This document shows, one piece after another, positions 11,227 through 60,163 of a stretch of DNA of 64,000 bases. Each line of letters starts with the position of its first letter. The first letter of the stretch is position 1. The position numbers were made by a program, and so were the translations under genes. A model generated the notes under the pieces. It had not been told where the DNA came from. It saw nothing but the letters and a program-made list of their open reading frames with translations, and did not search any database. The DNA comes from Lepidodermella squamata (Eukaryota > Animalia > Gastrotricha): positions 310,001-374,000 of the forward strand of contig JBLDXI010000023.1 in NCBI GenBank assembly GCA_047495785.1, written 5' to 3'.

Positions 11227-12944
11227 AAGGAGAAGGTTCAATACGTTGTGCGAAGCACGGCGGATATCGCGGCTGAAGGCGAGTACCGACAACGCGGCGG
11301 AACGCGATCAAACTCGGCCATCACCTCCGTCAAAGTCATCGATCTGACGGGCAAGGAGGTCGAGCGATGCCTCGACTCGGACGAAGCAGGGCTCACCTAC
11401 TTCGACGTGCCGGAGTTGCGGCACAATCTGAGACTGCTGGTCGGCCAGGCTGAAGACGACGTGATCGACAATTTGAAAACGAGGGATCGAGAAAGGGACC
11501 AAATCGCCGTGTTGGAGCACGATAAACAACGATTGGACCAGGTTTTAATCGAAGAGGAGAGACAAACCGCTCAGTTACAACAAATCGTGACCCTGGTCAA
11601 TAAACTGGACGATGCGACGTCGTTGGATGACGCGATTTCTCTCATTTCCGACCTGCGGATCGATTTCGAGAACGAATACGTCATGTATGGCCTCGAGCGG
11701 CTGTTGCACCCGGTTTCAGAGCCACTGCTCAAAAATTCGCTATCAACCTGGGACCCGCTTGATCGCAGCCAGAAATCGTTGAATTACGACTCATTGGCTA
11801 AATTGAAACGAGCTTTCAGTGAATGTGATAATTTGCCAGCGTTCGATTCGCTGATTTGGGAACTTTGGGTGCCGCCGGTTCGCCAGGCCATCATCAACCG
11901 GTGGAACCCGCGTGACCCCGACATTCTAGTCGATTTATTCGAACTGTGGCAGCCGATCCTACCGACTTGGATCTGGGATAACATTAGCGATCAGTTTTTG
12001 ATGCCGAGAATTTTGGCCGAGGCTGAAAATTGGAACCCAGTCACCGATGCGTTGCCCATCCATCAGTGGATCCACCCGTGGCTCGGGTAGTTGGGCGACA
12101 AATTAGAGCCGGTCTACGTTCCGATTCGTCAGAAAATCGCAGCAGCTCTCGCGAATTGGCACCCCTCGGATCCTTCCGCGAGAATCCTGCTCCAATCTTG
12201 GTTGCGAGTTTGGTCCGACGGCCACATGCGGTCGTTCGTTCTGCAACATATCGGGCCGAAACTGACTCGGCTGATGCAAGACTTCGTGATAAACCCCTGC
12301 CAGCAGCAGTTGGACGCCTGGAAATGGGTGTTTGATTGGCTGGAAATGATGCCTCATCCGTTTTTTGTCACCCTACTCGATAAGCATTTCTTCCCGAAAT
12401 GGCTGCAATGTTTAGCGGCTTGGCTCGATGCGAGTAATACCGATTACCAGGAGGTTACGAAGTGGTACCTGGGATGGAAAAGCAGCATCCCCGTTGCGTT
12501 GGTTGAAGAGCCGAATATCAAGGATAAATTAGGCCTGGCTTTGACTATGATGAATCAGGCGATTACCGGCGGCAGGGCAGAGTCGGTTTTGGCTGCGGCG
12601 TCCTACCCGCCTCAAATGCCGTATCAGCAACCGCCAATGCCTGCGTACGCCCCGCCCCCGCCTCCTCCTCCGCCGCCGAGTGTACCCCTCAGTTTCAAAG
12701 AAATCATCGAACGACGGGTTTGTTCCGCTAATTTCTCGCGTCATTTCGTGCTTCAAATTTTAATTATTTTTTTTAGGCTGAAGCTTGTGGCTTGGTTTTC
12801 ATGCCTGCACAGCGGAGTCTTGGCACTCAGCAAATGTATCAACTAGGCCGAGTGATTCTCTATATCGATCGAAATGTCGTGTTTGTGTCGTCGAACGGCG
12901 CTTGGAAACCGGTGTCTCTTGAAGAACTGTTTTCACTAGCCTGA
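11227..12944 (+). pseudogene. TFIP11: Tuftelin-interacting protein 11 (spliceosome disassembly factor), 5'-truncated with in-frame TAG
   Basis: Motifs: VKVIDLTG, PELRHNL, PIHQWIHPWL, WHPSDPSA, INPCQQQLD, HFFPKW, EVTKWYLGWK. A GT-AG intron at 12718-12776 joins the last exon AEACGLVFMP...ILYIDRNVVFV...WKPVSL* (12777-12944). TAG at 12088-12090, in-frame TAA at 11224, and no G-patch upstream. AATAAA at 13024. Confidence 0.85.
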
Positions 12945-20476: not shown

Positions 20477-23400
20477 ATGTATATTGTGGTGGGCACTCCG
20501 CACGTCTACCGCGTGCAGATTCCACCGTTTTTCAAGGGTTACGACCGGCGAGCTCTGCGAAATCTTCATGGCGCGCAAGACAACGCCAGCGGCGGTCAGT
20601 CGGACGCTAGTCTCGAACCCTACTTTCTAACTGGTGTTATCGCTAACCGCGAACGAAACTTATTCCTTCTTTGGTCGAAATCGTCCTTCTATTTATGGAA
20701 CTGCCGACCAGCTGTACAGATCTTCGCCTTTTCGCGATCACCTGAAAGCGTTTCAGAGTACGGCGAAAATGTGAAAATCATGTGGAAATCTGATTCTAGC
20801 GCAATCGCTGTCGCGGTAAGAATTTTGCATGATTGAGAAATTGAAGATTATAATGTATTGCTATTTAGACTGATAAGAGCTACATTTTGTTTTTCAACAT
20901 CGAGTTGGAGCGATCTTCAGGTGGTTTCCTCTCCGGATGGACCGGTCAGAAACGCGTTGACAAGTCGCAACTCGACGAAGACTTCTTACCCTGGACCAGT
21001 ATCGTCGCCTTACAAATCACACCGTCTTTCCAGATCAAAACCGACGGCGTCGTCGAAGATTTCTGCTGCATTCGCGATGAGTTATTAGTCGCGTTATCAA
21101 CCGGCGCAATTCAACGCATTTCCTGGTCTGAAGGCCTGGTTAACTTCGCCTTTTCCTTCAATATTAACGACGTGGCGTTCGGTTTAGAGTTACAACACTT
21201 CCGAGGTTCGGTGTTGAGCCCATCCTCGCAACACACGATACCGAAAACGTTCGTAAAAGCGATCACCTACAGCTCAATGTTGGCTGGTTTTGTTATTACG
21301 TTAGCTGACGGTCGTGCTGGGTTTATCACTAGCCCAACTCTGAGATTTGAGCCGAATAAGCTGCAAGCAGTGTGGGCTAGAGAGATAATAGAAGCAACGG
21401 GGATTCAAAACGTGAATAACCACTATAGACTGCTGTGTTTCGGCTTGGTCTCAGGCCGGGTCGCAATTTACTGTATCGGCGAGTTGACTGGGGCGCTGGA
21501 ACTGGTTCAAAATATGGAAGTAACCCCGGTCGACTGCCCAGACGCCCATGTGAGATGCGGGCCAGTCTCAGCCATGGCCTGGTCGCCCGATGAACGAGTT
21601 CTAGCCGTTGCGTGGCAGAACGAGGGTGTCGGGGTGTATTCAGTATTCGGCTCACTGCTCTTTCTATCGTTAACTTCACTGCCTAATCTCGCTTTAGATC
21701 AAAAATTGTTGATTCAATCCTTGGATTGGAGCCCTGAAGGCTACAGATTGTGGCTGGTTAACCGTAAATTTGACCTGAATTTCGCGACGTTGGGTTTCGC
21801 GAAATCGGCCCTGACGCGCAATTCGTGTGAATCGAATCACTTACATGTACTGCTTCAAAGCGACGATTCGTTGTACGTAGGCCTCGTCGATCGGCTTCAC
21901 GTGCCTGCGAATTCGTCGAACGAGTCGAATTCGAACTCGACAGACGACTGCGGACCAGCCATGGCACTGAGTGTCGTCCCAATCGCGCCTGGAATGGCGT
22001 ATTTGAGCGACAACTGGCCGATTTCTTACAGCTGTGTCTCAGAGACCGGCGATTGGCTGGCGGTTGCAGGCCGCACTGGCCTGGCGTGTTTTTCGCTGAA
22101 ACGCCGTCAGTGGAAGTTGTTTGGTAACATCTCGCAGGAGCGGGATTTTGTTGTTTCCGGCGGACTGGTGCTGTGGCGAGATTTTGTGCTGGCGCTCTGT
22201 TACAACGTGGCGGCGAAACGCGATGAGTTGCGGTGCTACCCGCTGGCTGGCCGGTTAGATACGGCCCTGGCGACGGTGCAACGGCTGGAAACGGCCGCGC
22301 TATTGCTCAATTGTGTGCAGGTAAGCTTAAAGATGAAATTATTCTTGTATTTAGATTACTGAACATTTTGTTAAAATTGTGCGATGGTTTCTCGAAATGA
22401 GTCGGACCTTGTAGATCGGAGTCTAGTTTTTGGAAATTCAAAGAAATTGTTGTTAACATGTGGCTTAACTTCATGCCGTTCAGATTTTATTTCGAGAAGT
22501 ATTTCGCTTTATTTTACTCTCGGATTTTAGCGAATTTTACACTTCTTCTCAACAATTTACGGAAGAAACTGCTCTTCTTCGGTTAAATTAACGAAAATTG
22601 AATGAACAAAATAATGGCGCGGTGAAATTTTTGAATTCTTTTATTTTTATTATTGAAGTCAGCCTTGATTCAAAAAATATTATTTCGGTCTAAGGTTTTT
22701 AAGATTATTTCTGACCGATCTGAAAATTTCAGCGATTTTTACATTATTGTTTGCGATTTTAAACATTTTTGTCTAAAGTTTGAAAATTAGCGGGTAACTT
22801 CAGACCCCAATTTGCGTCGGATTTTAAAAATATGAAAAATGACGTTCTCCTCTTTTTCACTCGTTTCCAAATTGCCAAATTTTTCCGAAATACAATCATA
22901 ATAGGGAACTACATTACGATTTAGAAAAACCGAACTTTTGATAATTTGATTAAATTAGTGGATAAATTTGGAGTTCGATATGGCTAAAAATCCATTTTGC
23001 TATATCAATTTTTACTACAAAACTCGAGTGTCGTTGGGTATATCAACTTGGGAGAATCTTACGCTGGTGCCAAATTTCATTTAATTCAATACCTAACCAT
23101 TTTATTCTTTATTTAACTGGTTAGGCTTGAAGGCTGGGTCTTTAAATTGGGGATTTCGAACTGATTGGAATAATTTAGTAATGATTTCACGATTTCCCAT
23201 CTAACTTTTCGATTTTATTTAATTGTCTCCTTTATTATTTCAGGATTTGTTGATAATTTTCGGCGTCGATGCAGTGGTGACCGTGCTGGCACTGCGAAAA
23301 CGCGGCGCCGCCGTCGATCGCCAACGCCTCGTCGAGCTCAACATCGGGCAGTTCGTCGCGCATCCGCTCACGGTCACGCACATCGCCCTGACGACGCTCA

Positions 23401-26400
23401 GCACCGACGTCGTCCTCCTCATGTCCGCAAACGCGGCCTCGAAATCGTCAGACCAACAGCAACAGAACCAACAGGCGGCGAATTCACTGCTAGTAACTGC
23501 AGCTGGGCGGGTGTTACTGCTGCAGGCTGACCGGGCAGTTGCCCAGGGCGTCGTGTTTTCGACCCCCGTCCGCGTGGCCGAGCACGTTGAGCAGTTGTGG
23601 CTGATGGCGCACGACCCGGTCGCCGGCAACGCGGCCCTGGCGGAGACCATTTGGCTGTACTGCGGCCGGCATGGCGCCAACGTGTGGCTGCCGTTGACGA
23701 GCAGCGGCCAGCAGCCGTCGGCGAGGGCCTTCCTCTCACGCCGAGTCATGTTACAGGTACAGAAAACTAGAATTATCGAGTAAAAGATTTGTGTCAAGTC
23801 CAGTTTTAATTTATTGATTATCGCCCGATTTAAAATGCGATTTTTCGAATTTTTTAATTTTTTTTAATTTCATCTGATGGTTATTTTTGAATTTTTTTTC
23901 CCTTTTTCCTCTGTAATTTTATTGAAAATACTTGTGTGATCGCCGATTTGTATGGTTATTATAGTCTGATAAATGGTCAGACGTGGTTTTCTGAAAAAGT
24001 TGCCATGGAATTTTGGATTTAATAGCGAGTGATTATAGCAATGTGATTTCCTCGAATAGCTCCAATGAAGGTTTCGATTTTCCGATTCATTTACCAATTT
24101 ATGCCAACCCGTCACATCACAATATCATTAGGCCACAATTACTGGTACCAATTTGAACTTGTGAATATTGTTGAATTATGCTCGAGCTTTTCAACCTCGA
24201 ACTGTCCTCTTTGATGAAAAAAGTCGCAAAATGTTTTCAACAGTTTTTATTGGAACGAGATCGTTTGTTATCAATAAGTGCATCATCATCAGTCGAATTG
24301 AGATTGGCTTCGCGCAAAAAGCTCTTCTCTTCCTCCTCAGGCGAGCATTTCACGCCGAATTCAGTCGTTAAAGCGTCGACAGCTTCGGCTTGATCGTTGC
24401 GTTTTTTGAGTAGGCAAATTGTGAGACATGAAACAGGCTGTACATTGCCGTCTGATTTCCTGTGGCTATACCCGAATTTTTCAATCAGTGGAACGAATTC
24501 GTTGTCGAATTTAACGTCGTAGAGATGCGAATAATCTGTATTTGTGATCAAAAGGCTATTGCTATTGAAGTCGATGAAATTATGCAGTTTGTATTGCGGC
24601 GTGAAATAATCACTGGCTGCGATCGTGAAGAAAATGCCGTCGAGTTTCGGGTTATGCGAGCTTACTTTCACGGTTGCTTTGACGAAATTGAACAGAAGCC
24701 GCGGTGTGTTGCTTTTGTATGGGGTGTTGCGAAAATATGGCGACCACGGGCAGTGGAAGAATATGTAGCCCTCCTTCCAATATGTCTCTGAAATTTCGAT
24801 GATAAATAAGTTGAATATGAGCTATTATAATAGAAAATATTATAGGATAACATTTTATCTTAATACCCGAATTTTCCAATTTTTAAAAAATGAAAAATAT
24901 TTATAATCAGAAAAAATCGGATTTTAAAATTTTAAAATTGCACTCACTTATTTCTGCTCATGTTATGCCACCTACCTAAATGATCAATATTTGTTGCGTC
25001 GATCTGGTATTCCCATGGCCGGTTGCTATCTTTGAGCGCTGCCATCTTTCGAATTCTAGGCAGAATTTCCCCGGGATTTCCGAATTTAGCGCTCGCCATC
25101 GTCGTGATCATAGTTAGAAGCGTGTCTTTGTAGTCGATGTCGTATTCGCCGCTCAATTCCGTCGCCACGATGTCTTCCCAGCCGCCTCGAGCCGCTGCGG
25201 TTCCGGTTGAAAATTCGAATCGGCCCTCGCCGACGAAAAGAACCGGCTTCCGTTTGGCTATCAGCCGGTCCTCAACTGTGCCGTTCGATAGCGAAATTCG
25301 GCTTCTGTAACTATTATCGTCAACTTTCAGCCAGATTTCGCCCTTGGGAAATGACATTCTACTCTAAAAAGTTGGCTCGAAAAATTGAAATGTTAATAAA
25401 TCTAATCGATGATCTGTTAAAATGGATGCTATTGAGAAATATCTTGCAAATGCGATCCGGGTAATAGTCGGGTAATTAGTGCGCCGGTGGCCGTTGTAAA
25501 CGGGCCGTTCAAGTACCCCATGGACGTGCGAACGTGACAATAATTGAGCACGGACTCGGTGAGCGGGCGCACTATACCGTCTTTTAGTGTCACCGCCACG
25601 CTATCGTTGCGCTGAAAATCAAAACATCAACTGCGCTCATCTGCGGTTAATTCCAATTTCAGCCGGAAAAGATTTTCGCATCATTTTGAATTTTGAAAGA
25701 AATCGATCTTGATGATTAATATGCGCAAATAAATTTTGAAAAAAGCATATACTTGTTATTCAAATTTGAGCAATATGATAATTCACACAAATCATCAAAA
25801 ATTAAGGAAAACGTCGGAAATGAGTAGAATTGTGAGTTCGTTTATTTCGAAGTGTCAAAGAATGAGCATGCAGAAGTAACAGAAAAGAACATAGCTTTGT
25901 CAAACAGATTTTCTTAAGCATTTGGGTCTAACTCCTTGGCTTTCGTCAGAATCCGATTCAGACCGTCGATTATTTAATTCGCGCAGAGGATTCTTTGGTT
26001 CGTCGTCAGATGACGAGAGTTTTTCGTCGAATTCAGACGATAACAGATCGACATCTGGGTCCTCGATACTCGCTGCCCCGCTATTAACCTGCTTAAGTAT
26101 ACAAATTGTCAGAATTGAGGTGCGAAGTTCCCCGCCGCTTGATTTGCGGTGCGTATAGCCGTATTGCGCGATTCGTGGAACGAACCATTCGTCGAATTTG
26201 ACGACGAAATGCTGAGCGAGTTCTGCGTCAACAAGTCGCAGGTTAACGCTGTCTTTGTTGAAAATCAAAAAATTGTCGAGGCCATAACGCGGCGCGAAAT
26301 AATCGCTATTCGCTATGGAGAGAAATATGCCTTCACGCCTCGAGTTCCTGTAACATTTTTCAGCACTGGTGTTAACAAAGCGTTTAACTAGACGGGCTGT

Positions 26401-29400
26401 TCCATCAGCGTCCCACATGAGTGGATCGTATGGCACCCACGGGCAGTTGAAGAAAATGTAGCCGTTGGTCCAATATTTTTCTGAAAAGACGAATACAAGT
26501 GGGATGAATTATGAATTTTTGGCAAATATTTATATATATATTTATAGGGCGCTAATCTTGGGCACATTTTATTTTGAGCTAATGTGAAAAACCTGAAATT
26601 TAGAATTAATGTGAAAATGATTTTAAATGTCCACGTTTAATCTTGAAATTTTATTTCCTAATTTTCGCCTATTTTAATTGGTAGAAATCTTATTTATCCT
26701 TGTTTGAGAACAATTAGGAAACCTAGTTTTCTGAAAATTTGAAAGGTTAAAAAGTCCAATGCCAGGTGCCAGGTGCTATATTTTCCCGTTAACTGGTCTC
26801 CCAAAATTGTTTTGAATTATTTTTAAGCTCAACTATACTTGGTTACCTAAATGTTCTGGATTAGTGGCATCGATGCCGAAGTGCCATGTCGGTTTTCCAT
26901 TGCTCAACGCGGCCATGTCGCGAATCCTGGCTAAAATGAGCCTAGGGTCTTTGGGCTGTTCCCGCGGGCGTAAATTCTCATTAGTCGCCGCCATTTTCGC
27001 GATCATCTGCAGTCGAGTCTCGTTGTAGTCGACCTGCTCATGCGTGACAAACTCAGTCGCGACAATTCCGTCCCAGCCCCCGCGGGCAGCGGCTACGCCG
27101 GTGCAGAATTCGAACCGGCCTTCGCCGACAAAGAACACCGGTTGCCGCTGGTTAATCAAAAGAATTTCAACAAGGCCATTCGAGAGGTCGAACTGTTTCA
27201 CACTTGATGCATCTTTGGTGGTTAATATCGAGGTCGTATGTCGAACATGTTGAAAGCTTGCCATGAATATTTTTTCTTCCGACCTGTAAGGATCCTAGCT
27301 CATAATTCAAAGAAAAATTAATCGATAATCGAACATTTTTCTTAGTACTCATTTATTTGGCTATTTGGGTTAGTTTTCGAATGTAAACGTGGAAAAGGAG
27401 CAGCTTTAGGGCTTATTGAAAGGGAAATCAAGAGAGAAAATAGTGGATAAATTCATGTTTGAGTTGTATCGAAAACATGCAGACTAATGGCGGCCTGATT
27501 TTATGACCCGATTAACAGTGTAAAACCGTTGACCGTTTGCCGGCGGCATTGCGTAACGCATCGCAAGCGTTTTTACGTTGTTCCTTGTGATAAAATTTCG
27601 GCACCAGCCGCGTTTGTTGCGTAACGATTAACGATCCAGCGTGCGCGCCCTTGCGGGGATCGCACCTTGATACGTCAAAATGGGGCAATTTATTTAGCTG
27701 TTGGTCTCTTGTTGAAAATAGTTGCACGCCATGAATTTTAAAGCTCCTAATAGATCGAGTGGAAATAAGTCTATAGAGTCTCTCGACAGTTGCTATTCGT
27801 TCGGGTGTTCGTTGCGTAACTGCGCCCACTGTGGTACGTCAAAACGAGGTAATTAAAACATTGGCATCACTAAAAAACCTCTGGCTGGCTAAGTAGACGT
27901 GGTTGGTAATTAGCTCTTTGGTATGAGGAACAGCTGTTTTTTTTATTTTTGGAAAAAGTAGGAGGTTCTATGGGGGTATACTCGCGAGCATTTTAGAGGA
28001 TATATAGCCACAGTTCTTTTGACAGTTATCGCTCTACATGACTAATTATGCTGGAAAATGGCAGTTTATGAGCGGGCGCGCCTACATGGCGTAAGCGTAA
28101 TGAAGCTATAAAAAATGTTCCCCGGCCTTGAAACAGAAATGTTTGACTCAGGTGTTGCTGCGCGTGAACTACCATGGGACAGCTTTTCGTTTAGAAATGT
28201 GCCATCACCTTACTCATCAGATGTGGCTATTTGTGGCTATTTGATAAAATTAGGCGCGAAATTCGCGAGGCTGATAATTCTCGTGTACATATTTTGGAAA
28301 TTTTTGAATTTTTACAATTTTTGCAAATACGTCGAAGATGGTGAAATGTATGAAATAACATGAGCTTATTAGCGTATTAACGTAGCATGGATAATGATAA
28401 TAATATTATATTAATTGATTCGAAGGAAATTGAATACATAGTAAAGCGTAATTTATGTACATTTTTCTGAAACGTGAAAAAATCGTATAGCGATTCAAAT
28501 GAACAAATGAACAAATGAACAAATGAAAATGTTTTATTTTACGTCCACCTTCGGCTAAAAGTGATGGTAATATATATACAAGCCTTACCGTGAGGGTTTA
28601 GGGGACGGCTGACGACGAGAGATCAGCTTCAGGAACAGTCGCGAACAATCTGCTTTTTCCCATGAATTCATAATTTTCTATACTGTTACATAGTAGCTGC
28701 CATTCTTCCCGGTCTCTAGCTGTTACTTCCGCCAATTCTAAATCTGCAATTTTGTGAATTTCGATGCGTCGCATCAATAAGGTTGATTTACTCGTCGTTG
28801 ATTTACTCGCCCTCGTTTTTTAGGTTCATTACGATCCCTGATACGTTTTTCATGTATATAAAAAATTCCGATTTTTAGAAGGCTTCTTCGGAGGCAGTCA
28901 GACCATCGGGTTGGCGGCCTGCCGCGAGGCAAGTACCAACTCGGGTCGACTGCTTTCCAATAATACATAATACTCGTGAGACTTTCAGGGTCATATTCGT
29001 CCTGTCGAATTATATGGCCAAAATATTTCAGACGAAATTTTTCAATCAATTTACTCAATTCCATTACGTCGCAGATCAGTCTAATATCAACATTAGGAAT
29101 ATAATCTGTCCTAAACAGACCCATAATTGTTCTAAGCCATCGCATAAAGGTGACATTTAACCTTTGCTCTTGTTGGGTGGTCAGGTTCCAGGTTTCGCAG
29201 GCATAGGTGACGGTAGGAATAACAACGCATTTAAGGACTTTCAATTTCGTAGCTAAGCTCACGTGTTTTCTATTACACATAAGTTTATTGAGGGCACCAA
29301 AGCAGCCGCCAGCTTTCGCTATGCGTGCCTTGATCTCCTCGTCCATTTTCCCGTCAGAAGTGATGATGCTTCCTAAATATTTGAAAGACGTCACTTTTTC

Positions 29401-32400
29401 CAAAAGTTTGCCGTCTAATTCAAGTTGGTAGTTTCTATCCTCACCGATCACCATGTATTGGGTTTTACTAATGCTGATTTTCAGGCCTAGCTCCGTACAT
29501 GCCTTATTGAAAACATCCAATAATAATTTAATTTCTTCATGACTCATACCTATTAAAGTTCCATCATCCGCGAAAGCAATCAGGTTCAAAAATTGTTCAG
29601 TATTAAGCGTTCAGTATAGCGATTCGAACTGTATTTTTTATTCCAATGCATTTTATTCGATTAATGCAGTTGGGACATTTTTATAGTTTCCGAATACAGA
29701 TTGTGAGACATGGTGTGGGTAAAAGTGTCCCATCCGATTTTCTATGTCTATAACCATATGATTCGATGAGCGAAACGTAGGCATCGTCGAATTCGATTTT
29801 GAAATAATTTGAGTAATCGCATCCTCCGATGATCAGGCGGTTGAATTTCCAGCCGAATCGTATAAAGTTCAATAGGCCGTAGTCTGGCGTGAAATATTTG
29901 TCTGTTGATATCGAAATGAGGATTCCACGCAAATTGCAGTTTTGCAGGCATAATTCCAGACTGGTGGCCATAAAATCGTACAAAAGTTGGGCAGTTCTGT
30001 TCTCGTATTGCTCTCCATGTTGATACGCCGACCAGGGGCAGTTGAAAAATAAATACCCTTGTCTCCAGATGTCACCTAAAAAATGTATGAAAAATCGTTG
30101 ATATTACGGAAGAAATAAACATTTTGAATTTTTTACAATTCGACTAGATTTTTTACGAGAAATAAAATCTCAATAAAATAATTAATTGGAAAAATTGCGA
30201 AAAATTCTTTATATTAAAATTCCTTACCTAACTGTCTCGGATTCGTTGCGTCGATACCAAATAACCAGTTGTATCGTTCGCACCTCAGGCCAGTTAGCTC
30301 CCTGATTGTTTGATATTTTTGCCTCGAAGTTCGAAATTCGTCCCGGTTGACGGCATAAATCATCGTCCGTATCGTATCTCTGTAACTGCTCTGCTGATAA
30401 TTTAACTCTGTAGCCAACACGCCGTCCCAGCCGCCGCGGGCTGCTGCCGTGCCGGTGGAAAATTCAAACCGGCCCTCGCCGACAAACACCACGGGTTCGC
30501 AACGGTTGATTAAAAGGTCCTCGACAATGCCACTCCGAATAATGACTCTTCGCCTAGAGCGGCTATTTTGCCCAGTTTTCAGCCAAATTGTATTGCGCCG
30601 GGGCATATAAAATATCTGAGACAATACTTTCAAAAAAATTATTGGAATTTTTTAGATTATAATTCCGATGTAGCTATAATTTTTTCGAATAATTTAGTGG
30701 CTTTTTGCGGGATTTTCACGAGAAAACATAGAAGAAATGAAGATTGAATTGACAACTCAGAAACGTTTGGGGTATCGGAAATATCTAATCACCTTCGAAT
30801 CGGTTAAATTTGATTAATGGCCGCGCGTGTGAATCGGTGCTAAAAGGAACATCACTGTTTATCCCACACATGAGCTCGTATATCATATATTAGGCCCATG
30901 TCATAATTTTGAGATAGAAACAAATGGAAATGGATGAATTATTGGTCCGAAATTTGTCTACGCTACATGAAACAATGAGACGATGCGTGAGAAATTTGAC
31001 TTATTATTAAGTTGTGTTTTATGACAACGGCGGGTCTTAACAGCTATTCGGCTGTAAAAATGTTTCCCCCCTCGGCCATTAAAGTGGCTTGCATCTACAT
31101 CATGGCTATAACTGTGCGTGTGTGTGAACCACCTTGATGCACTCGTTTTTAGAGGCTAATTTCAAGTGCGTGCTCGTCGTCTTGTTCCGTGTTGATATAA
31201 CTGCTAAAATATGCAAGCTCGTTAAGTATTACAGTCGACCAATTTTATGCTTCTAAACGTGAAAAAGTCGAAATATCTTAACCGCCAGCCAGTTTTATTG
31301 CTGATAATTTGATTAATTAGTGAGCTGTGATCTATAATCGATTGCTAAAGCTATTCATCATAGGTGGGCAACTTTGGCAGTAAGCAAACTGTAAGAATTG
31401 GAGACCGACATTCAAATACGAAGCCGAATTTTTCGACATTTTTCACGAAATCAGCGTCGAATTTGAGTTCATATTTGTCGGACAGCATCGGTGCGTTATT
31501 GCGGTCGTAAACTCTCAACTTGTGATTATCGCCGTTTTCGTCGAAATTTATGAAATGATGCAGTTTGTAGTCGGGCAAATTTTCGTCGTCGCATGGAATG
31601 GAGAAAATGATGCCGCTCAAATCCTCGTTTGCTCTGAATAATCTCTCACTTGCGTGAATGAAGTTGTGTAGAGGTCGGGAAAACTCGTGGTGCTCGCCGT
31701 TTAAATCGCCAGGGCTCGGGCAGTTGTAGTAAATGTAGCCATTTTTCCAAAATTGTGCTAAAAATTGAAATTATCATTCGAAATTGTAAAAAATTATTTA
31801 AAATTGCCTTTAAGCCTTGAATTTATAAAAAATATTCGCTCCATTTCAATAAATAAATTTAAGAAAAATTCGCTATAATTCAGGTTTTTAATTCTGATTT
31901 TTTATAATTTTCTTTGGTAGGAGATAATTTAAATTAAAAGTTGAAAAATTGCGGAAGTTTTCGTTTATTCTCACCTAAATGCGCTCCGTCACCGGGCCTG
32001 ATACCGTACACTTTCCTTGCTGTTACGGCTTCTAGCTCATTCACGCGGGGCAACCGGCCGAAATTTGAGTTCAGACGATAGAAATGAGACCATGGCACAG
32101 TGTCCAGCGCCTTTTCGTATGCGCACTCGGTTGATGCCCGCAATCCGCGCCAATTTAGGCGCCATTTAGCGACGGCGTTTGAAAAGTTGAAATCGTTGCT
32201 ATCGCCGACGATGGCGACCGATTGTCGCTGGGTGATGAGCAGATTTTGAACGAAGCCATTCGACAGCGCGATTTGTTGCCGCGGGTGGTTCCGGTCCACG
32301 AGCAACGTTGTGCTGACGTTTTCCATGAAAAAAATCACCTAATTGAACCAAAAAATATTTGCTAAAATTGAGGAAATTCGTTAAATTCAATTTGGGTTGA

Positions 32401-35400
32401 AGAGTTCATTCCACTAAAATAATTGCGGGATTTTGTGGTAAATGGCGTTTTAATCGATCAGCTAAGAATTTATCAAAAATAGAGAAAAGGAAGAGTGCAT
32501 TTTTTTAAATGCGGTAATAGTCCAAAAATGTATCTTTGAACTGGACCGAATGAAAATGTGAAACGTGAAATGGTGTACTTATGCTGCCAATAATTTCATT
32601 AAATTTCTACTATTACGAGTTTTGTAGTCCTTCGCAATCTGCAGAGGTGTGTGTGATTCAATTTCACTGCTGTTGTGCGTGATTGTTGTCTTATTTGCGT
32701 GACTGAGCATGCTGGTACCCTACAATCAAGCCGGCTTTGACACCTCTATATTTAAGAACAATAGCCAAACGTGTGAAAAGAATAGCCGCATCAGACGTGA
32801 TTGCGCTTAACGAGTTGATTTTCCATGATAATTTCTTGCCTTGAGCGGCTTTTAACGCGGCATCTCTCTGCCATGTTAATTCAAACGAACTATCAACGCA
32901 TTCTGTTATTGGAATCTCAAACTCTCAGAAATAGTATAAAATTTATTATGGTACCGAATCGGGGGAAAATGAAAAAAAATCAATTTTTATGGGTAAATTT
33001 CTCAAGTATCTAAATCAGATTTTAATTGTTAAAGTTTATATTTCGCACTGCTCCCTTTATTTAACTGTATTGTTTTTGCAGGTGGAATGTCCGATCTACC
33101 CGTTGACTGCGCTGCTGAGCGTCGCGGCCGTTGTTGGCGCCGCCTCGGAAACGCCGCCGGCCTCGGTTGGTCGAGTTCGGCCGACGCGCTTCGAAGCAAC
33201 GCGAACCAGCCACAGCTACTTGCCGTCTCTACTCCGGCAACTGCTGCGGCGGCATTTGGGTCTGCAGGCCTTGGATGTGTCTCGATCGTGGCGAGGTGAG
33301 AAATCGTCTTTAAATCGATATTTTATTGGTTTTTTTCTGAAGATATTTGTACAAATGTAGCTTGAATTCCTTATTGGAATAAGGATTGCGCGGAAACAAA
33401 AGCGCGGATATTAAAACAGTTTCCTTTTTCAAGGCCATAAAATGATAATTTCGAGGGGCATTTTGGGGCCCATAGGGGCACACGGCGCAATTCAGGTGAG
33501 TGCAAACAATAATGGAGCCTATGACAATAGAGGGCTTGATCTGTGAGCCGGGTACGTCGCAAAATCACCTCCAAGTACTTTACCCTTGTGTGACCCCTTG
33601 CTAAGTGCGCTACAACTATGTCAATTTGACCACTGTTTAAGGCGGATTTTCTCGCGCCCTGTTTTTTTGGTTCCTCCACGAGTAGCCAGGGCGGGGCTTG
33701 TGGTGTAGTGGTATAGCCTCTACATAGCTACGCAAGCCCTAGAGAGCGAGGTTCGATTCCCGGCGACAGCAGTCGTCGCGGGAAAAAATCGAACTGGATG
33801 AGCGTCATCTATCATCCCCTGGCTTTCGGGCCTGCGGTCGACCAAGCCGCTAGAAATTGGTACCGCTTTGCGGGTAATGGGCTGGAATGCTGCGAACACC
33901 TGGCCCCGGATCGAGCATGCATACCTCGGTATGGGTTCCAGTTTACGCTCAGGGCCTAGAAAAGGATACGAGCACCTCAGTATGTTCCGACAGGAACTTG
34001 CTACCCTACGAGTAGCCAGCCATCAAGTACGTCCCGTGGGCTAACTAACGGGTGTTTCCTCGTTCTCGCGTGAATTTGTTGGGAGTCAGTGTACACAGGC
34101 GCGATTGTCTCGGCAATTGCTCTTAACTTAACTGTACTCACTTGTAGGATCGCACTCGGACCTTGGTCCCTATCGCCTTGATGTGAACAATAAAAATAAC
34201 GAAAAAATCAAAGGTTTCATCTGAACGCGATTTTTTACTTTCCCATATTATTAATTAACAATGCAAATTATATTCACTATCACGAAGAAAACAAAATGAT
34301 AAACTAACTCGATTGCAATTTCTCGGGCTTTTTTTCAATATTGCCGTTATCTTCCTGCTATGGAAGTACGATAGCCAATCAATCTGGTATTCGCGGCAAC
34401 GTGCGATATACAGCTTGTGAAGCTCAAGTGTTGTGGATCAGGGTGGCAGCTGAAGTGAGAGGAGAGAAAAAAGCATAACGGCTCGGGCGATTCGCTGACC
34501 TGCGATTCGCAATTTCGCCACTAACAAACTTGAAAAATAAGAGACCAAAATCTGTCTCCGCTAGGGAGTTATTAAAGCTGAAAGTTTTGATTGCGCAATA
34601 GTGTCAAACGGTTTTCTTGCTATAACTTGGTATCCTCAACGCGGATCAATTTGCTGAAGTTCTTGTTTTTTGTAAGCGAATGGTGCTCAATCGAATTATC
34701 GACTCTTTGGAGTCGCTGGACCTTGAATAGAGAAAATCGAATTTTAAGCCATGAACGCGCGTATTTGGGTGAATCGAGAGCTTTATATACATCTGAATTG
34801 ATTTCGTGGAGAGTTCAGGACACACTTAATGGTAGATTTTGTAAATTTAATGTAGATTGACGTTATTTTCTTCGTTTTACTGACGTCTATTTTAATTTTT
34901 ACTAGGTCTTGCCTCGTTTCCACACGTTCTGGAGCTGCTGCTCCATGCGGTAGTCGACGACGAAGCCCTGTCGAAAAACCCACTGCCCGACCCTCTGCTG
35001 CCTCGAGTCGTCGCCTTTCTACGCGCCTTCCCCGAACACGCCCCGGCCGTCGTGGTTCAATGCGCCCGTAAAATGGAGGCCGTCCTGTGGCCGTACCTGT
35101 TCGGCGCCGTCGGAGCGCCGCGCGACCTGTTCGCCGACTGCCTGGAACGCAGCGACCTCGACACGGCCGTGTCCTACCTCATCATCCTGCACACGACCGA
35201 GCAGTCGACGGTTGTCGCGCGCCAACTCACCGCCCAACTGCTGGCGGCTGTTCTCGCGGCGCGACGGTTCTCACTCGCGGCCGATATCCTGCGGTTTTTA
35301 CGATCTATCGGCTCCGCCTGCCTTGATACCTGTAATTTGATTTTATCACCGAATTTTTCCTGATATCTAAGCGATGGAATTATTTTATTTATTAAACTTT

Positions 35401-54074: not shown

Positions 54075-56363
54075 CTATCGACGTAGAATTGGGTAAAGCC
54101 ATGTCAAAGATTCGAAAAGCGAAGAAATAACAGCCAGAAAACTGATCGCGGTTTGTTGAAGTATAGGATATGGCGTTAAAATTATGGCAATCAAAACACC
54201 AGCCGGCAGCAACGCTGCTCCGATGATTGCCGAAGCGCAAGCCGCCAGAAATTCTCGGCAATACTGCTTAACGCTTCGGATATGTTTCAGTTGAAAGGCT
54301 ATCATTAACGCTGTGGCTAATTGCAGCATTAACACGCCTCCGATTGCTGACAGAAGAGCCAAACCCAAGCCACTTATCGAGCATCGAACGAACCACGTTT
54401 CTTCGACTGTATCTGCGGATTCATCATATATCGGCTTCAGGTTTGACTCATTGCCGCAGTGATTATCAGCCAACAAAATCCAAGCTATCAAAAGTCCTAT
54501 GTTAGGAATTGCGAGTAGGATTGTTGCAAGAACCGTTTGTTTGTCAGAGGTCCTGCGATAGCTACTCGAAAATGCGAACTTTCCCGACTTGTTTGACCTT
54601 CTAGAAGCAGCGCTTGCAGCTCTGAAGGATGGAGAACTCGCGTAAGCAGCTGCATGGACGAATTTCCCCAGTCTAGCTCGAATTACGTATAGACGAGCTG
54701 TGATCAAGCCGCAGATTGAGGTCAGGCCCAGACACAAGAGGGAAAACGAGGCGGCGTCTAGCATAACACTTTTTGCGCTTCTATCAATAGCGAATAGGGC
54801 CGAGGCTGAGTTCAGGAACATACATCCTATTAGGCCTGCCGATTTCAGCTTCCTGTAACTCCAGAATGACGCAGGCCTGTCTGCAGCAATTGCGAGTAGC
54901 CCGACAAATTGTGCCAATGATACTAAGCAAATCAAAGCGCAAGCTGCGATGAAAGCCGGGCGATAAACTTTCAGGAAGTTGATTTCCAGTAACGCCTGAT
55001 CTCTAGGGGGCCTGCCCAATATCCAGCTTACCCTCGCAACTGAATGTAGGTACATGCTCGCGAGATCGAATTCGTCCAAACTTGTGTTCAGACTTTGCAG
55101 AGCTAGGTAGACTCCCTGCAACCCACTCGATTCGTTGAATTGCGTAACGACTTGAATATCCCCGAGTAACTGCCCAGTTTTGCTGTAAGATGTCTTGCCG
55201 ACTCTCAGTCCGTCATATTCGTGGGATAACACAACTTCCCTAGCTACTCTGGCAACGATTTCCGGTTGACCTGAGTAGTTTTTCAGGGAAAGGCCGTAAT
55301 CAGCTTTCAGCCGCCGGTCCGTTTCATTCAGCTTCATAGCGACATTCGTCAACACGTCGTGGAGGAAAAACGAACTTATGGCATCATCCGTGGTATAATT
55401 GCCCACTTTGAAGATATGGTCCGCTAATTCCTCAGGGGTATCCCCTAAATCACTTTTCCGCGTGAAGTTCAGCGGTTTTGCTATGTTTCCAACGTAAAAC
55501 GTCTGCCGAGCCTGATCTCGTAAAATCTCGCCCGGGCAGCCAGGCAATGGAGTCATTGCGAAGGCTGTCAAAGTTGTGATGAAAACGTAACGAGGCCCAT
55601 GAATCCCAGCTTTATACGCCTCGCAGAAGAACTTAGGTACCAATATAGTTGTACTTATCGTCAGCACGATAATCCTGAGCCCAGACTGCTTCAGATACGA
55701 GATGAACTCGGGTGTTACCTCATTCATAGCATTGAAGAATGGAACTTCGATTCCGGCTGAAATGGCCTTGCTGTGGAAGAACAGCGCCTGATCGAAATCG
55801 ATGACATTCGTAGTAGTAGAGATCAGCGCGACTCTTCTCCAAAAGCCTACATTCTTTATGAAGCTCAGCATGGCTAGAGCTGCCGTTTTCGAAGTAGTGA
55901 GCGAAAGGAACAAGTTAGGGTACCGTGTTTTATCGGCTAAAAACGAAGCTCCACAGAACGATGCGATCGCAACTAAGTTAACGTGTTGAAGTAGAGGGCC
56001 GATCGCCTTGCAACTCGTCGAAATCGCCGGTCCAGCCATGATCGGAGCTTTGAAAACATCAGGCGGCAGCGGTGATCTGATGTAGTCGATCAAACGAGGC
56101 GCCGCTTGGATGCCGACAATCTCGTCTCGAAGGTCGAATTCGACGATGTAGTCGCTTAGGAGATCGTCTCTTGCGTTGATTTTTTCGCCCACGTATCGAA
56201 ACATTATCATGCCTCCTTCGACTTGTTTCGGGTCCATCATGTACAGAGGGACCAAATACAGGATTTTCAACTTTGATTTTCTAGTGGAGTTCGACTGGCA
56301 GCAAGACAGGCTGATGCAAAGCGCGAACAATATAACGAGCGTGGCAAATTTGCGAGCGATCAT
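54075..56363 (-). CDS. Class C GPCR, GABA-B-like (Venus flytrap + 7TM), intronless
   Basis: A signal peptide follows Met 56363 (the ORF is open to 56438). VFT motifs: INARDDLLSDY, GPAIS, RYPNLF, FFCEAYKAGIHGPRYVF, GRPPRD. Seven hydrophobic segments and no cysteine-rich domain. Confidence 0.88.
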   Translation of the reverse strand: MIARKFATLVILFALCISLSCCQSNSTRKSKLKILYLVPLYMMDPKQVEGGMIMFRYVGEKINARDDLLSDYIVEFDLRDEIVGIQAAPRLIDYIRSPLPPDVFKAPIMAGPAISTSCKAIGPLLQHVNLVAIASFCGASFLADKTRYPNLFLSLTTSKTAALAMLSFIKNVGFWRRVALISTTTNVIDFDQALFFHSKAISAGIEVPFFNAMNEVTPEFISYLKQSGLRIIVLTISTTILVPKFFCEAYKAGIHGPRYVFITTLTAFAMTPLPGCPGEILRDQARQTFYVGNIAKPLNFTRKSDLGDTPEELADHIFKVGNYTTDDAISSFFLHDVLTNVAMKLNETDRRLKADYGLSLKNYSGQPEIVARVAREVVLSHEYDGLRVGKTSYSKTGQLLGDIQVVTQFNESSGLQGVYLALQSLNTSLDEFDLASMYLHSVARVSWILGRPPRDQALLEINFLKVYRPAFIAACALICLVSLAQFVGLLAIAADRPASFWSYRKLKSAGLIGCMFLNSASALFAIDRSAKSVMLDAASFSLLCLGLTSICGLITARLYVIRARLGKFVHAAAYASSPSFRAASAASRRSNKSGKFAFSSSYRRTSDKQTVLATILLAIPNIGLLIAWILLADNHCGNESNLKPIYDESADTVEETWFVRCSISGLGLALLSAIGGVLMLQLATALMIAFQLKHIRSVKQYCREFLAACASAIIGAALLPAGVLIAIILTPYPILQQTAISFLAVISSLFESLTWLYPILRR

Positions 56364-57039
56364 TTTCAAGATTTTCAAGACTAATGAGTTTATGGCGATA
56401 AGATCTGCGCTTATATGTGAGTGGCACTCTAACTGCATGCGGGGTGCGCGATTGCAAAAACGTAACTAGCCGGAAATTCTGAAGTTCAGACGTCGCTCTG
56501 TTAGCTTGTCGCAGTTTTTTTCCGTAGGCCATCCTGTCTAACCGCAGACAAATGCGCCTGCAGGAATGGGCTCTGCTGCAACCACGTAATCCGGTGAAGA
56601 AACTATTGAACCGGCTATTTCGAACGTAACGCGTGTGGTCATTTTTAGTTCCTGCAATCAAAACATGTTTTTTCCGTTCATTATCGCGTTCTAGATAAAG
56701 TAATCTATGCTGCGGTAAATGAATAAACTCTTATTTTCTTCAATTAATCAGTACTTTCAAAGCGGCGAAATTGCTTCTGGAAAGAAAACTGAAAGTCCTG
56801 TTTCGTTCAAGATATTTTTATAAGGAAAAAGCTATGACAGGGAAATGAACTCCAACTACTGCGTAGCAACATGGTAACGTGCCCATTATTATTGAGTTTT
56901 CAATTGAGTTTTCAACGCGAATCTAAAGTTGCAGCTTCACAAGATTTAGACCACACCCAACGCAAGTTCGGAGATTAATCCTTTTCAGGTCATTTTCAGC
57001 GACGGAGAACGAAGATTAGACAAAAGACCTTTTTTGCTA

Positions 57040-57901: not shown

Positions 57902-60163
57902 TCACTCAACATCCGATACTCGCCTTTTTCTTGACCATGCTCTCCAAATACGGACAGAGAAGGGCAACATCCAAGTTGAAGAGATAGCAGCCGAAATGGC
58001 AATCAGGCTCAAAGAAACAGCGGTTCTTTGCTTCAATTGATTGCGACCTGTTAGAAGAGCAATCAGAATCGAACTCGGGTACATCGTAGCCCCAAAAGCT
58101 GCACCGAAGCACATGAGCCAAAACTCTCTAGTTCTTCTCAATCCATTGATTTGTTTAAGTTGATAGCAGAACATGAGGGATGCAAAAATACAAACCCCCT
58201 GTATGGCGGCTGTTGTCGATAGAAGCCCCCAACTCACCGCTGAAAACGACGAGCAATGCACGGCGTAGTTTTCGATTTCGACATCTAGCTTTTCGTTGTA
58301 AATTGGCTCATCAGTGGTCAAACGATTGAAGCATTTGATGTCTTGAGTAGCTAGCCAAGATACAGCTAGAGCGCAGCATCCACTGGTGTAGTAAGCAACA
58401 GCTGCGAAGAGGTGTCGGTCGACATGTTCCCAGCAGTCGGGGCAAAATGAAATCCGATCCTTCAAAAAGCGACTTCCTGCGTAGATAACGCCAACAGAGC
58501 AACTTTTCTTCACTTGGATCGCGCGCAGTAGAATTAAAGGACGGAAACTCACAACTGAGAGAACGATTGGCCCGCCCACTAAGAGCAGGAACATTGAAAC
58601 GAGTGAAATTGACGAAGATGCTGGAACTAGCTCCATCGAAAAAGCTCCAGACGACGAATTGAGAATCAGACATCCGAATAAGCCCAACATTTTAGATAGC
58701 GGAAATTTCTTCGCGCTCTTCCGCAGTCTCAAGTGTAAAAATGCGAACGAAATCTGAATTATAGACAGAATTGTGATAAGAACCCATGTTGTCACGAAAA
58801 TCTCATTGGAAACATGCTGAAATTCAACCCTGATTGTTGGTTTGTCTTTGGGCGGACGGCCAGAAATCCAGTCAATCTCTCTAGTCATTTGAATCTCAAA
58901 ATTGGCAACATCGTAAGCATTCGAGAAGTTCTTCGACGCTTTAGACCTCAACAGACCGGCATATTTCAGGCCAAAAACTGGTCGGTAGATCAAGACGCTT
59001 GACAAATCGCCTTCAAACACTCCAGAAGCACTGTAAGACTTCTCGCCATACCTTAGACCGAAATACCTCAGATTAAGCACGGATTCATTAGCTATTCTGG
59101 CGATGAGTTCTGCGTTGTTAGGGTAATCTCGGAGGCTCAAGCCGTATTTTAACCTCAAACTTGCTTCTGTCGCGTTCAGGGCAAGGACAGCGGCTAATAC
59201 TGTGTCGTGAACGATTGTAGGAGACACGTATGAAACTAGAGTCCGATTAACGGCGTTGTTGAGAAAGTTATAGAGCTGCAGATTCGAAAATCCCAACTCG
59301 CTGAATTGCGTGTAATTTTCCATGTTTGTCACCCCAAAATAGAAAGAATGCCGAACTTGAAGCAGAATGTCCGATAGAGAGCATGTAGTAGTCTGAACCG
59401 CTGTTGAAAATCCCCCTTGCTGCGTCATGAAAACGTAACGTGTCCCCGAAATTCCGGCTCTGTAGGCCTCGCAAAGAAATTTTATGTAGGTCAAAGCGTT
59501 CGAAACACTGACAAAAATTATCCTGAGACCGCTGCGTTTGAAAGATTTGATGTCATCAGCAAAAACGTCACTGGCTATGTTGAACCAAGGCACGGTAAAT
59601 CCTGACGCCAAAGCCCGTTCCTGAAGGAAGAACGCGAGACCATAATCATTGACATTGCCCGAATTCGCCCAGATGCCGAGCTGTGACCAACTGCCCATTT
59701 TACGCATGAAAAGCAAGATTGTCATAGCTGAGGCTTTGTAGGTAGATATGGACAGGTACAGATTCGGATTGGCGGATCTGTCTTCCAAAGATGGAGCCGC
59801 GCATGACTGACTGATAGCTACCGTGGCGACGAAGTTCAACAGTGGCCCAACAGCTTTGCAGCCTGACGAGAAAGCAGGCCCGACGATAATCGGAGATTGT
59901 AGGGTCGAGTTTGCGTTTTTGAATTCGACCAATCGGCGGACAGCTGCAATGCCCAATTCCTCGTCTGCTATTTCCAGCTCAAGGTGGTAGTCGGATAAAA
60001 TATCCGGCCGTAGATTGACTTGGTCGACGACGTATTTCGTGGATAGAATCATAGTTTGGACAGACAGTGGATCGACCTGGCTTATCGGTACTAAACTGAG
60101 TAGCTTGAGTTTGAAGGGTTTCAATGCCACCGCAACCTGGAAAAGGAAGAATATCACTATCAT
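57902..60163 (-). CDS. Class C GPCR, GABA-B-like paralogue 2, intronless
   Basis: Signal peptide, VNLRPDILSDY, GPAFSSGC, FLCEAYRAGISGTRYVF, GRPPKD and 7TM. Confidence 0.88.
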   Translation of the reverse strand: MIVIFFLFQVAVALKPFKLKLLSLVPISQVDPLSVQTMILSTKYVVDQVNLRPDILSDYHLELEIADEELGIAAVRRLVEFKNANSTLQSPIIVGPAFSSGCKAVGPLLNFVATVAISQSCAAPSLEDRSANPNLYLSISTYKASAMTILLFMRKMGSWSQLGIWANSGNVNDYGLAFFLQERALASGFTVPWFNIASDVFADDIKSFKRSGLRIIFVSVSNALTYIKFLCEAYRAGISGTRYVFMTQQGGFSTAVQTTTCSLSDILLQVRHSFYFGVTNMENYTQFSELGFSNLQLYNFLNNAVNRTLVSYVSPTIVHDTVLAAVLALNATEASLRLKYGLSLRDYPNNAELIARIANESVLNLRYFGLRYGEKSYSASGVFEGDLSSVLIYRPVFGLKYAGLLRSKASKNFSNAYDVANFEIQMTREIDWISGRPPKDKPTIRVEFQHVSNEIFVTTWVLITILSIIQISFAFLHLRLRKSAKKFPLSKMLGLFGCLILNSSSGAFSMELVPASSSISLVSMFLLLVGGPIVLSVVSFRPLILLRAIQVKKSCSVGVIYAGSRFLKDRISFCPDCWEHVDRHLFAAVAYYTSGCCALAVSWLATQDIKCFNRLTTDEPIYNEKLDVEIENYAVHCSSFSAVSWGLLSTTAAIQGVCIFASLMFCYQLKQINGLRRTREFWLMCFGAAFGATMYPSSILIALLTGRNQLKQRTAVSLSLIAISAAISSTWMLPFSVRIWRAWSRKRRVSDVE

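Follow-up and report, generated by a model that had tools for sequence, protein, structure and literature searches.

A tandem array of four candidate BMT5-like methyltransferase genes in a RIC1 intron of Lepidodermella squamata

Four two-exon genes, here called g1 to g4, were found on the minus strand within positions 24237-32326 of a 64,000-nucleotide stretch of Lepidodermella squamata contig JBLDXI010000023.1 (positions 310,001 to 374,000 of the forward strand; the whole stretch is referred to as the window and numbered from its first letter). They lie antisense between plus-strand exons of RIC1, and an earlier reading made from the sequence alone had described them as stand-alone relatives of yeast Bmt5 and of the N-terminal domain of FDXACB1. 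We analyzed their gene structure, family, fold, expression and descent, and the results point to an old array of BMT5-like methyltransferase paralogues, one copy of which has lost most of its recognizable catalytic motifs.

The gene models were consistent throughout the array (Table 1). All four donor sites read TTAG/GT and all four acceptors consisted of a T-run followed by CAG or TAG. The exon 1 lengths all equal 1 modulo 3, and the intron is therefore a phase-1 intron in g1-g4; it occupies the same alignment column in all four spliced proteins. Pairwise identity was 42-46% among g1, g2 and g3 and 28-37% between g4 and these three. The g3 and g4 proteins stop a few residues past the last strand, and g1 and g2 add only low-complexity acidic tails. 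A tblastn search of the window with the four spliced proteins detected no fifth copy.

The sequence-only reading had proposed four intact two-exon paralogues with a common phase-1 intron, which our models reproduce, and a set of motifs present in all four, which applies to g1-g3 only. The motifs VGEGRFEF(S/C), ATE, (G/Q)IDATN, FF(H/N)CPW and GYxHRKS occurred in g1, g2 and g3, while the g4 counterparts were VGDSNDFNFS, STE, GIRPGDG, YYNCPS and GFVFECRS. The S-adenosylmethionine (SAM)-binding motifs, which comprise the G-E-G loop following beta1, an acidic residue following beta2 and D-A-T following beta3, are thus kept in g1-g3 and not in g4, where the loop after beta1 is G-D-S plus a one-residue insertion and GIRPGDG stands at the D-A-T site. 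Motif IV is FHCPW in g1, FNCPW in g2 and g3 and YNCPS in g4, and none of the four has the canonical F-N-F-P-H. With its G-E-G loop and catalytic-loop Trp gone and its IDAT degenerate, g4 is most likely catalytically dead as judged from its sequence, either as a pseudoenzyme or as a slowly decaying copy. The retained motifs suggest that g1-g3 are probably active methyltransferases.

RIC1 exons were recognized by Pfam on the plus strand on both sides of the array, and the array therefore lies antisense inside RIC1, where the sequence-only reading had placed it. A lenient Pfam scan of five small plus-strand open reading frames (ORFs) that lie within the array or shortly downstream of it revealed no hidden RIC1 exons. 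The 3' end of the host intron probably lies near 33.07 kb; an ORF near 33.1 kb, for which Pfam gave no confirmation, is presumably the next, RIC1-like exon.

Table 1. Features of the array and its surroundings (positions in the window; nt, nucleotides; aa, amino acids).
Feature	Positions	Strand	Details
g1 exon 1	25357-24976	-	382 nt; start codon, N-terminal hairpin, motif I VGEGRFEFS, ATE, IDATN
g1 exon 2	24787-24237	-	FFHCPW, GYSHRKS, LTIC; acidic/serine tail, basic patch at end
g1 intron and product			intron 188 nt; spliced protein 310 aa
g2 exon 1	27264-26847	-	418 nt
g2 exon 2	26480-25900	-	FFNCPW, GYTHRKS, acidic/serine tail
g2 intron and product	26481-26846		intron 366 nt; spliced protein 332 aa
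g3 exon 1	30606-30228	-	379 nt, counted from first ATG
g3 exon 2	30075-29681	-	FFNCPW, GYRHRKS; without C-terminal tail
g3 intron and product			intron 152 nt; spliced protein 257 aa
g4 exon 1	32326-31975	-	352 nt; degenerate motif I (GDSNDFNF) and motif III (IRPGD)
g4 exon 2	31757-31351	-	YYNCPS, GFVFE; ORF and splice sites intact
g4 intron and product			intron 217 nt; spliced protein 252 aa
RIC1 exon	20887-22362	+	PF25440 positions 23-145, second beta-propeller
RIC1 exon, last recognized upstream of the array	23223-23783	+	PF25440 positions 141-297, E 3.9e-21, second beta-propeller
RIC1 exon, first recognized by Pfam downstream	35052-35363	+	PF07064 positions 76-162, E 8e-28, C-terminal solenoid
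Retrotransposon reverse transcriptase fragment	28774-29589	-	271-aa ORF; RVT_1 positions 148-204 of 205, E 1.3e-7
GCFC domain, two adjoining ORFs	11248-12846	+	PF07842 positions 5-166 and 170-275; upstream of RIC1
ANF_receptor ligand-binding domain	54075-56438	-	787-aa ORF
ANF_receptor ligand-binding domain	57902-60163	-	753-aa ORF

Family membership was assessed against Pfam PF10354 (BMT5-like, formerly DUF2431; gathering cut-off 24.7 bits). The Pfam scans of the array took the separate exon pieces, and the spliced proteins were used in the local hidden Markov model (HMM), hhalign and tblastn comparisons. The best direct PF10354 matches were those of g3 exon 1 (15.1 bits, E 0.03) and g1 exon 1 (12.4 bits), both below the cut-off, and the exon 2 pieces gave chance-level matches only. 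Neither FDX-ACB (PF03147) nor any other second Pfam domain was found on any exon piece, in agreement with the earlier statement that the proteins have no ferredoxin-fold anticodon-binding domain. A word-index protein search with g2 exon 2 returned 61 candidates, none of which scored, and a sequence search of the PDB with exon-1 and exon-2 profiles gave nothing meaningful (best E 0.15, an unrelated BRCT protein). A feature search of the ESM Atlas with g1 exon 1 placed BMT5-like clusters on top (0.90, 182 of 256 features), and the ten best family-bearing matches all belonged to the family or clan of the top match.

When an exon-1 profile was run with HMMER against 1.84 billion protein representatives, 63 matches were obtained at E<=1e-3, six at E<=1e-10 and none at E<=1e-30; relatives of the array therefore exist, and none of them is close. 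PF10354 was matched (E<=0.01) by 33 of the 35 single-domain relatives scanned, and its cut-off was passed by six of the ten nearest relatives that were scanned one by one, namely P0003 (58.8 bits), P0036 (39.7), P0021 (30.0), P0006 (28.7), P0016 (28.3) and P0012 (25.2). An HMM of the four spliced proteins aligned over positions 25-238 with P0006, P0036, P0016 and others at 76-82 bits (E 2e-16 to 4e-18, Z=1.84e9), from which it follows that exon 2 is homologous as well. The hhalign comparison of the four spliced proteins with 14 canonical FNFPH/FNFPF domain copies, a set drawn from the matches of the window's own profile, gave a probability of 96.1% (E 3e-9) over 120 columns covering motifs I-IV. 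It paired VGEGRFEFS with VGEGDFSFS, IDAT with VDAT and FFNCPW with FNFPH, which is the same motif-by-motif parallel to the Bmt5/FDXACB1 family that the sequence-only reading had drawn. The DUF2431 membership proposed there is supported, for the most part indirectly, by the PF10354 matches of the relatives, the HMM of the spliced proteins and the hhalign result, and we are highly confident that g1-g4 are members of the BMT5-like/DUF2431 class I methyltransferase superfamily and share its fold.

The relative P0006 (282 aa), which was among the best full-length matches and is 14-33% identical to the window exon pieces, served as a proxy for the fold. Its AlphaFold2 model (alignment A4) had a predicted local distance difference test score (pLDDT) of 87 and a predicted template modelling (TM) score of 0.87. 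The model showed an N-terminal hairpin and a helix, followed by beta1-alphaA-beta2-(two helices)-beta3-alphaC-beta4-alphaD-beta5-...-beta6-beta7 in class I order. The top 50 Foldseek matches of P0006 were overwhelmingly SAM-dependent class I methyltransferases (best E 2e-4), including TrmB, 16S rRNA A1408 methyltransferases, NNMT, Hen1 and fibrillarin, and VIA-align gave Z 9-10 over ~150 residues with a root-mean-square deviation of 3.2 A. The three nearest Atlas shapes were all PF10354 clusters (fungal BMT5-like, arthropod OBG-GTPase/BMT5 fusion and chordate FDXACB1), with TM scores by query of 0.52-0.54 as compared to 0.42-0.46 for generic methyltransferases. The g1 exon-1 half folded alone (alignment A5) reached a pLDDT of 86, and its hairpin, beta1, alphaA, beta2, two helices and beta3 were as in the corresponding half of P0006.

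The consensus of the relatives reads VGEGNFTFS ... R..W ... IDAT ... VWFQCPW ... GY.H ... TL.F, and FQCPW was nearly invariant among the scanned relatives, which are spread over several unrelated contigs of eukaryote-like character. The sequence-only reading had listed CPW in place of FPH among the features of this lineage-specific expansion, but it is no novelty of the locus, and FQCPW is a hallmark of a whole eukaryotic subfamily. On the aligned sequences, the C-P-W form of the window genes is held in common with this subfamily, many members of which match PF10354, and it is a mark of the subfamily and no bar to membership. Among the 36 columns with >=80% conservation across the subfamily, g1-g3 keep 26-27 and g4 keeps 19. 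With respect to the subfamily, the window clade has changed motif IV from Q to N or H, has lost a conserved Gly of beta5 and lacks a short segment with two conserved His. In the subfamily itself, one Cys (in QCPW) and three His (in GY.H, in DIH and before TL) are conserved (columns 368, 491, 511 and 525 of alignment A3 with g1-g4 added), a set that could, from its conservation, serve in catalysis or bind a metal. Of these residues, the window clade retains the Cys at the QCPW position and is without two of the three His.

The family had also been described as normally low-copy, which is doubtful, as other relatives carry 2-7 tandem domain copies. Seven, four to five and two tandem BMT5-like domains were seen in P0001 (1921 aa), P0002 (1277 aa) and P0003 (509 aa), respectively, and these come either from gene models that fuse the members of a tandem array or from genuine multi-domain proteins. 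Given 2-7 domain copies in other predicted proteins, tandem duplication recurs in the superfamily.

Only two sequencing runs, X1 and X2, contained the g1-g2 stretch. X2 contains 97% of the sampled words and is probably the source DNA; X1, which is RNA by guess only, was of low depth. Coverage in X1 was confined to 24150-24803, 25131-25348, 25785-26438 and 26875-27092, intervals that match the g1 and g2 exons together with their 3' flanks; both introns and most of the spacer had zero depth. Over g1, exon 1 was covered at 25131-25348 and exon 2 at 24259-24803, and the intron was bare; over g2, exon 1 was covered at 26875-27092 and exon 2 at 25785-26438. This pattern fits spliced g1 and g2 transcripts, with X1 being only probably RNA. 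Between 24349 and 27009, X1 also yielded many short contigs with 'opposite strands' joints ~100 nt apart, and these joints seem to be artefacts that arose when overlapping read pairs were assembled at low depth, and not biology.

A tree of 46 rows was rooted on the canonical domains; it was made quickly and has long branches, and the placement is provisional. In it, g1-g4 formed a single clade with a Shimodaira-Hasegawa-like approximate likelihood ratio (SH-aLRT) support of 87, which bears out the proposed lineage-specific expansion, and the window clade lay outside the canonical domains as the sister of all other FQCPW-type proteins; the tree gives no sign of orthology to Bmt5. Nei-Gojobori (NG86) estimates between the paralogues gave nonsynonymous divergence (dN) of 0.49-0.80 and synonymous divergence (dS) of 1.5-2.6, with one pair undefined; the resulting ratios of 0.22-0.50 are unreliable as the synonymous sites are saturated. 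This saturation indicates that the duplicates are old. The expansion had been called rapidly diverging, which these data do not show; a long branch (2.2) was found for g4 only. The copies thus appear old and apparently constrained, with all ORFs and splice sites intact despite saturation.

A second haplotype, seen in runs X2 and X1, differed from g1 exon 1 by seven single-nucleotide polymorphisms (SNPs), of which five were synonymous and two nonsynonymous (D13N and R31L, both in the N-terminal leader), and all three of its indels fell in the g1-g2 spacer. In X2, this second haplotype spans 25163-25836 and has 13 SNPs and 3 small indels in ~250 nt of the spacer; the individual sampled was strongly heterozygous at the array. 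If all four genes were non-functional relics (pseudogenes), or untranslated sequence open by chance, their absence from the searched protein collections, the missing catalytic motifs and long branch of g4, and the fact that no splice-junction reads were seen over g1-g2 in X1 would be accounted for. Such a history is improbable in view of four ORFs of 252-332 codons with eight splice sites intact despite saturated dS, the motif residues retained in g1-g3, the excess of synonymous over nonsynonymous allelic SNPs (5 versus 2) with the indels of the other haplotype in the spacer only, and the exon-restricted X1 coverage of g1 and g2.

We regard it as highly improbable that the array is transposon cargo or a recent viral or bacterial transfer. 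The reverse transcriptase fragment between g2 and g3 could be taken to favor the former, but the genes have no terminal or flanking repeats; no transposon ends or such repeats were found around the array, and DNA repeats were confined to the conserved coding motifs. The fragment itself holds the C-terminal end of a reverse transcriptase and is, by its RVT_1 match, a truncated insertion of a retrotransposon resembling those without long terminal repeats (non-LTR), and it stands outside the methyltransferase gene family. Transfer from a virus or bacterium is opposed by the spliceosomal introns of the genes and by homologues on long eukaryote-like contigs, and a scan of viral contigs with the FQCPW pattern gave 13 pattern matches, none of which was confirmed as a relative.

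Taken from the family fold and motifs, a mechanism for g1-g3 can be proposed in which SAM would be bound, like in other enzymes of class I, by beta1 with the G-E-G loop, the Glu in ATE and the Asp in IDAT, and the (N/H)-C-P-W loop after beta4 would present the target atom. Loops of the type (D/N)-P-P-(Y/F/W) position a nitrogen of a planar substrate, and by analogy an RNA base may be targeted at a nitrogen that is either exocyclic or part of the ring. Proteins of the nucleolus commonly have an acidic, serine-rich tail followed by a basic patch, and we infer that the acidic/serine tails and basic patch of g1 and g2 resemble these. That the substrate is RNA can be suggested only tentatively, by analogy. 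The most likely substrate class would be structured RNA (rRNA or tRNA), as for Bmt5, because this sole characterized relative methylates rRNA.

Alternatively, g1-g3 may be active methyltransferases whose substrate is not RNA but, for instance, a small molecule or the side chain of a protein, with the Q/N-C-P-W loop and the Cys/His pattern reflecting a chemistry other than that of Bmt5. This would agree with a motif IV unlike the canonical FNFPH, with the small-molecule O-, N- and C-methyltransferases that are the closest solved structures by Z-score, and with a catalytic domain for which Pfam showed no accompanying RNA-binding domain on the exon pieces. We nevertheless consider it unlikely, as the BMT5-like, OBG-BMT5 and FDXACB1 clusters come nearest in shape in the Atlas, the top Foldseek matches include TrmB and the 16S rRNA A1408 methyltransferases, the tails of g1 and g2 appear nucleolar-like, and the only characterized member of the superfamily methylates rRNA (PMC3950682). 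It is more doubtful still that the FQCPW-type proteins, including the window clade, are a methyltransferase family of their own in eukaryotes, as yet uncharacterized, and not rRNA 3-methyluridine (m3U) enzymes, with the window lineage having enlarged and remodelled the family for new or tissue-specific substrates. Were this so, the family would have its own catalytic loop and conserved Cys/His set, from which the window clade departs by the change of Q to N/H, the loss of two His and one dead copy. There was no sign at the locus of a defensive or other unusual role.

Taken together, the locus is best explained, at a probability of roughly 0.6, as an old tandem array of four stand-alone class I SAM-dependent BMT5-like methyltransferase paralogues of the FQCPW subfamily, born in this lineage and lying antisense in the RIC1 intron. 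Several points weigh against this explanation. The single window exon pieces all scored under the Pfam cut-off, and the class I fold was modelled on P0006, a relative of only 14-33% identity to them; the structure check called for by the sequence-only reading came out positive for this relative, whereas the g1 exon-1 half, which is half a domain, gave nothing significant in Foldseek (E>=0.3), with NAD-Rossmann and methyltransferase matches. The changes of the window clade in the catalytic loop, the Gly and the His residues could make its activity or its substrate different from those of the subfamily. Over g1-g2, X1 yielded no contig across a splice junction, and the identity of X1 as RNA was guessed. 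Finally, the FQCPW subfamily is without a member of known substrate, and the DUF2431 literature beyond the Bmt5 study consists of incidental mentions.

The gene family is real and was recognized correctly by the sequence-only reading. It is a known family that has gone unstudied, of which the locus is a divergent member restricted to this lineage; the locus is not a new kind of system, and it leaves the existing knowledge of the family unchanged. The BMT5-like superfamily has one characterized enzyme, yeast Bmt5, and the FQCPW branch has none. To these the locus adds a deep-branching clade that is missing from the searched protein collections and whose pieces fall under the Pfam cut-off. As three copies that appear intact stand next to one that appears inactivated, it offers a convenient natural set for asking what the substrate of the FQCPW branch is.

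Elsewhere in the window, the two adjoining GCFC ORFs upstream of RIC1 form a gene like that of the GC-rich-sequence-binding factor. The two neighboring long ORFs with an ANF_receptor ligand-binding domain appear to be receptor paralogues of one family arranged in tandem.

Among known systems, yeast Bmt5 (YIL096C) is the only superfamily member that has been characterized; it is the SAM-dependent m3U2634 methyltransferase of 25S rRNA, and mutation of its SAM motif abolishes activity (PMC3950682). In flies and humans, the m3U of the 28S rRNA peptidyl-transferase centre is made by a SPOUT enzyme and not by a BMT5 relative (bioRxiv 10.1101/2024.06.27.600882). Bmt5 and the window genes belong to the same Pfam superfamily by transitive and profile-profile homology, and have in common the conserved motifs I and III and, in all likelihood, a Rossmann-like SAM-binding fold; they differ in motif IV, which is FNFPH in the canonical Bmt5 type and F(N/H)CPW in the window. 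Chordate FDXACB1 and the arthropod OBG fusion have a BMT5-like domain near the modelled P0006 (TM 0.52-0.53 over ~185 residues). FDXACB1 additionally carries FDX-ACB and the arthropod fusion GTP1_OBG and MMR_HSR1, whereas the window proteins have no second domain. In the Atlas, the arthropod cluster has 61 members in which GTP1_OBG and MMR_HSR1 are fused to the BMT5-like domain and which are auto-named 'putative GTP-binding protein 5'; in arthropods, the canonical BMT5-like domain may therefore be linked to a GTPase of ribosome assembly.

The FQCPW-type relatives P0006, P0012, P0016 and P0036 are, like g1-g4, stand-alone proteins of ~230-330 aa, and UniRef names P0012 and P0016 '25S rRNA (uridine-N(3))-methyltransferase BMT5-like domain-containing protein'. 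They share with the window proteins the N-terminal hairpin, the 'LLI' helix, an HMM alignment over most of the length and the motifs VGEG.F.FS, R..W, I.AT, IDAT, F.CPW, GY.H and TL. Identity to the window proteins is ~14-33%, and the Q of motif IV, the beta5 Gly and the 'DIH...H' segment of the subfamily are replaced by N/H or lost in the window clade. The inspected relatives are single intronless ORFs, whereas the window genes each have one phase-1 intron and stand in an array of four.

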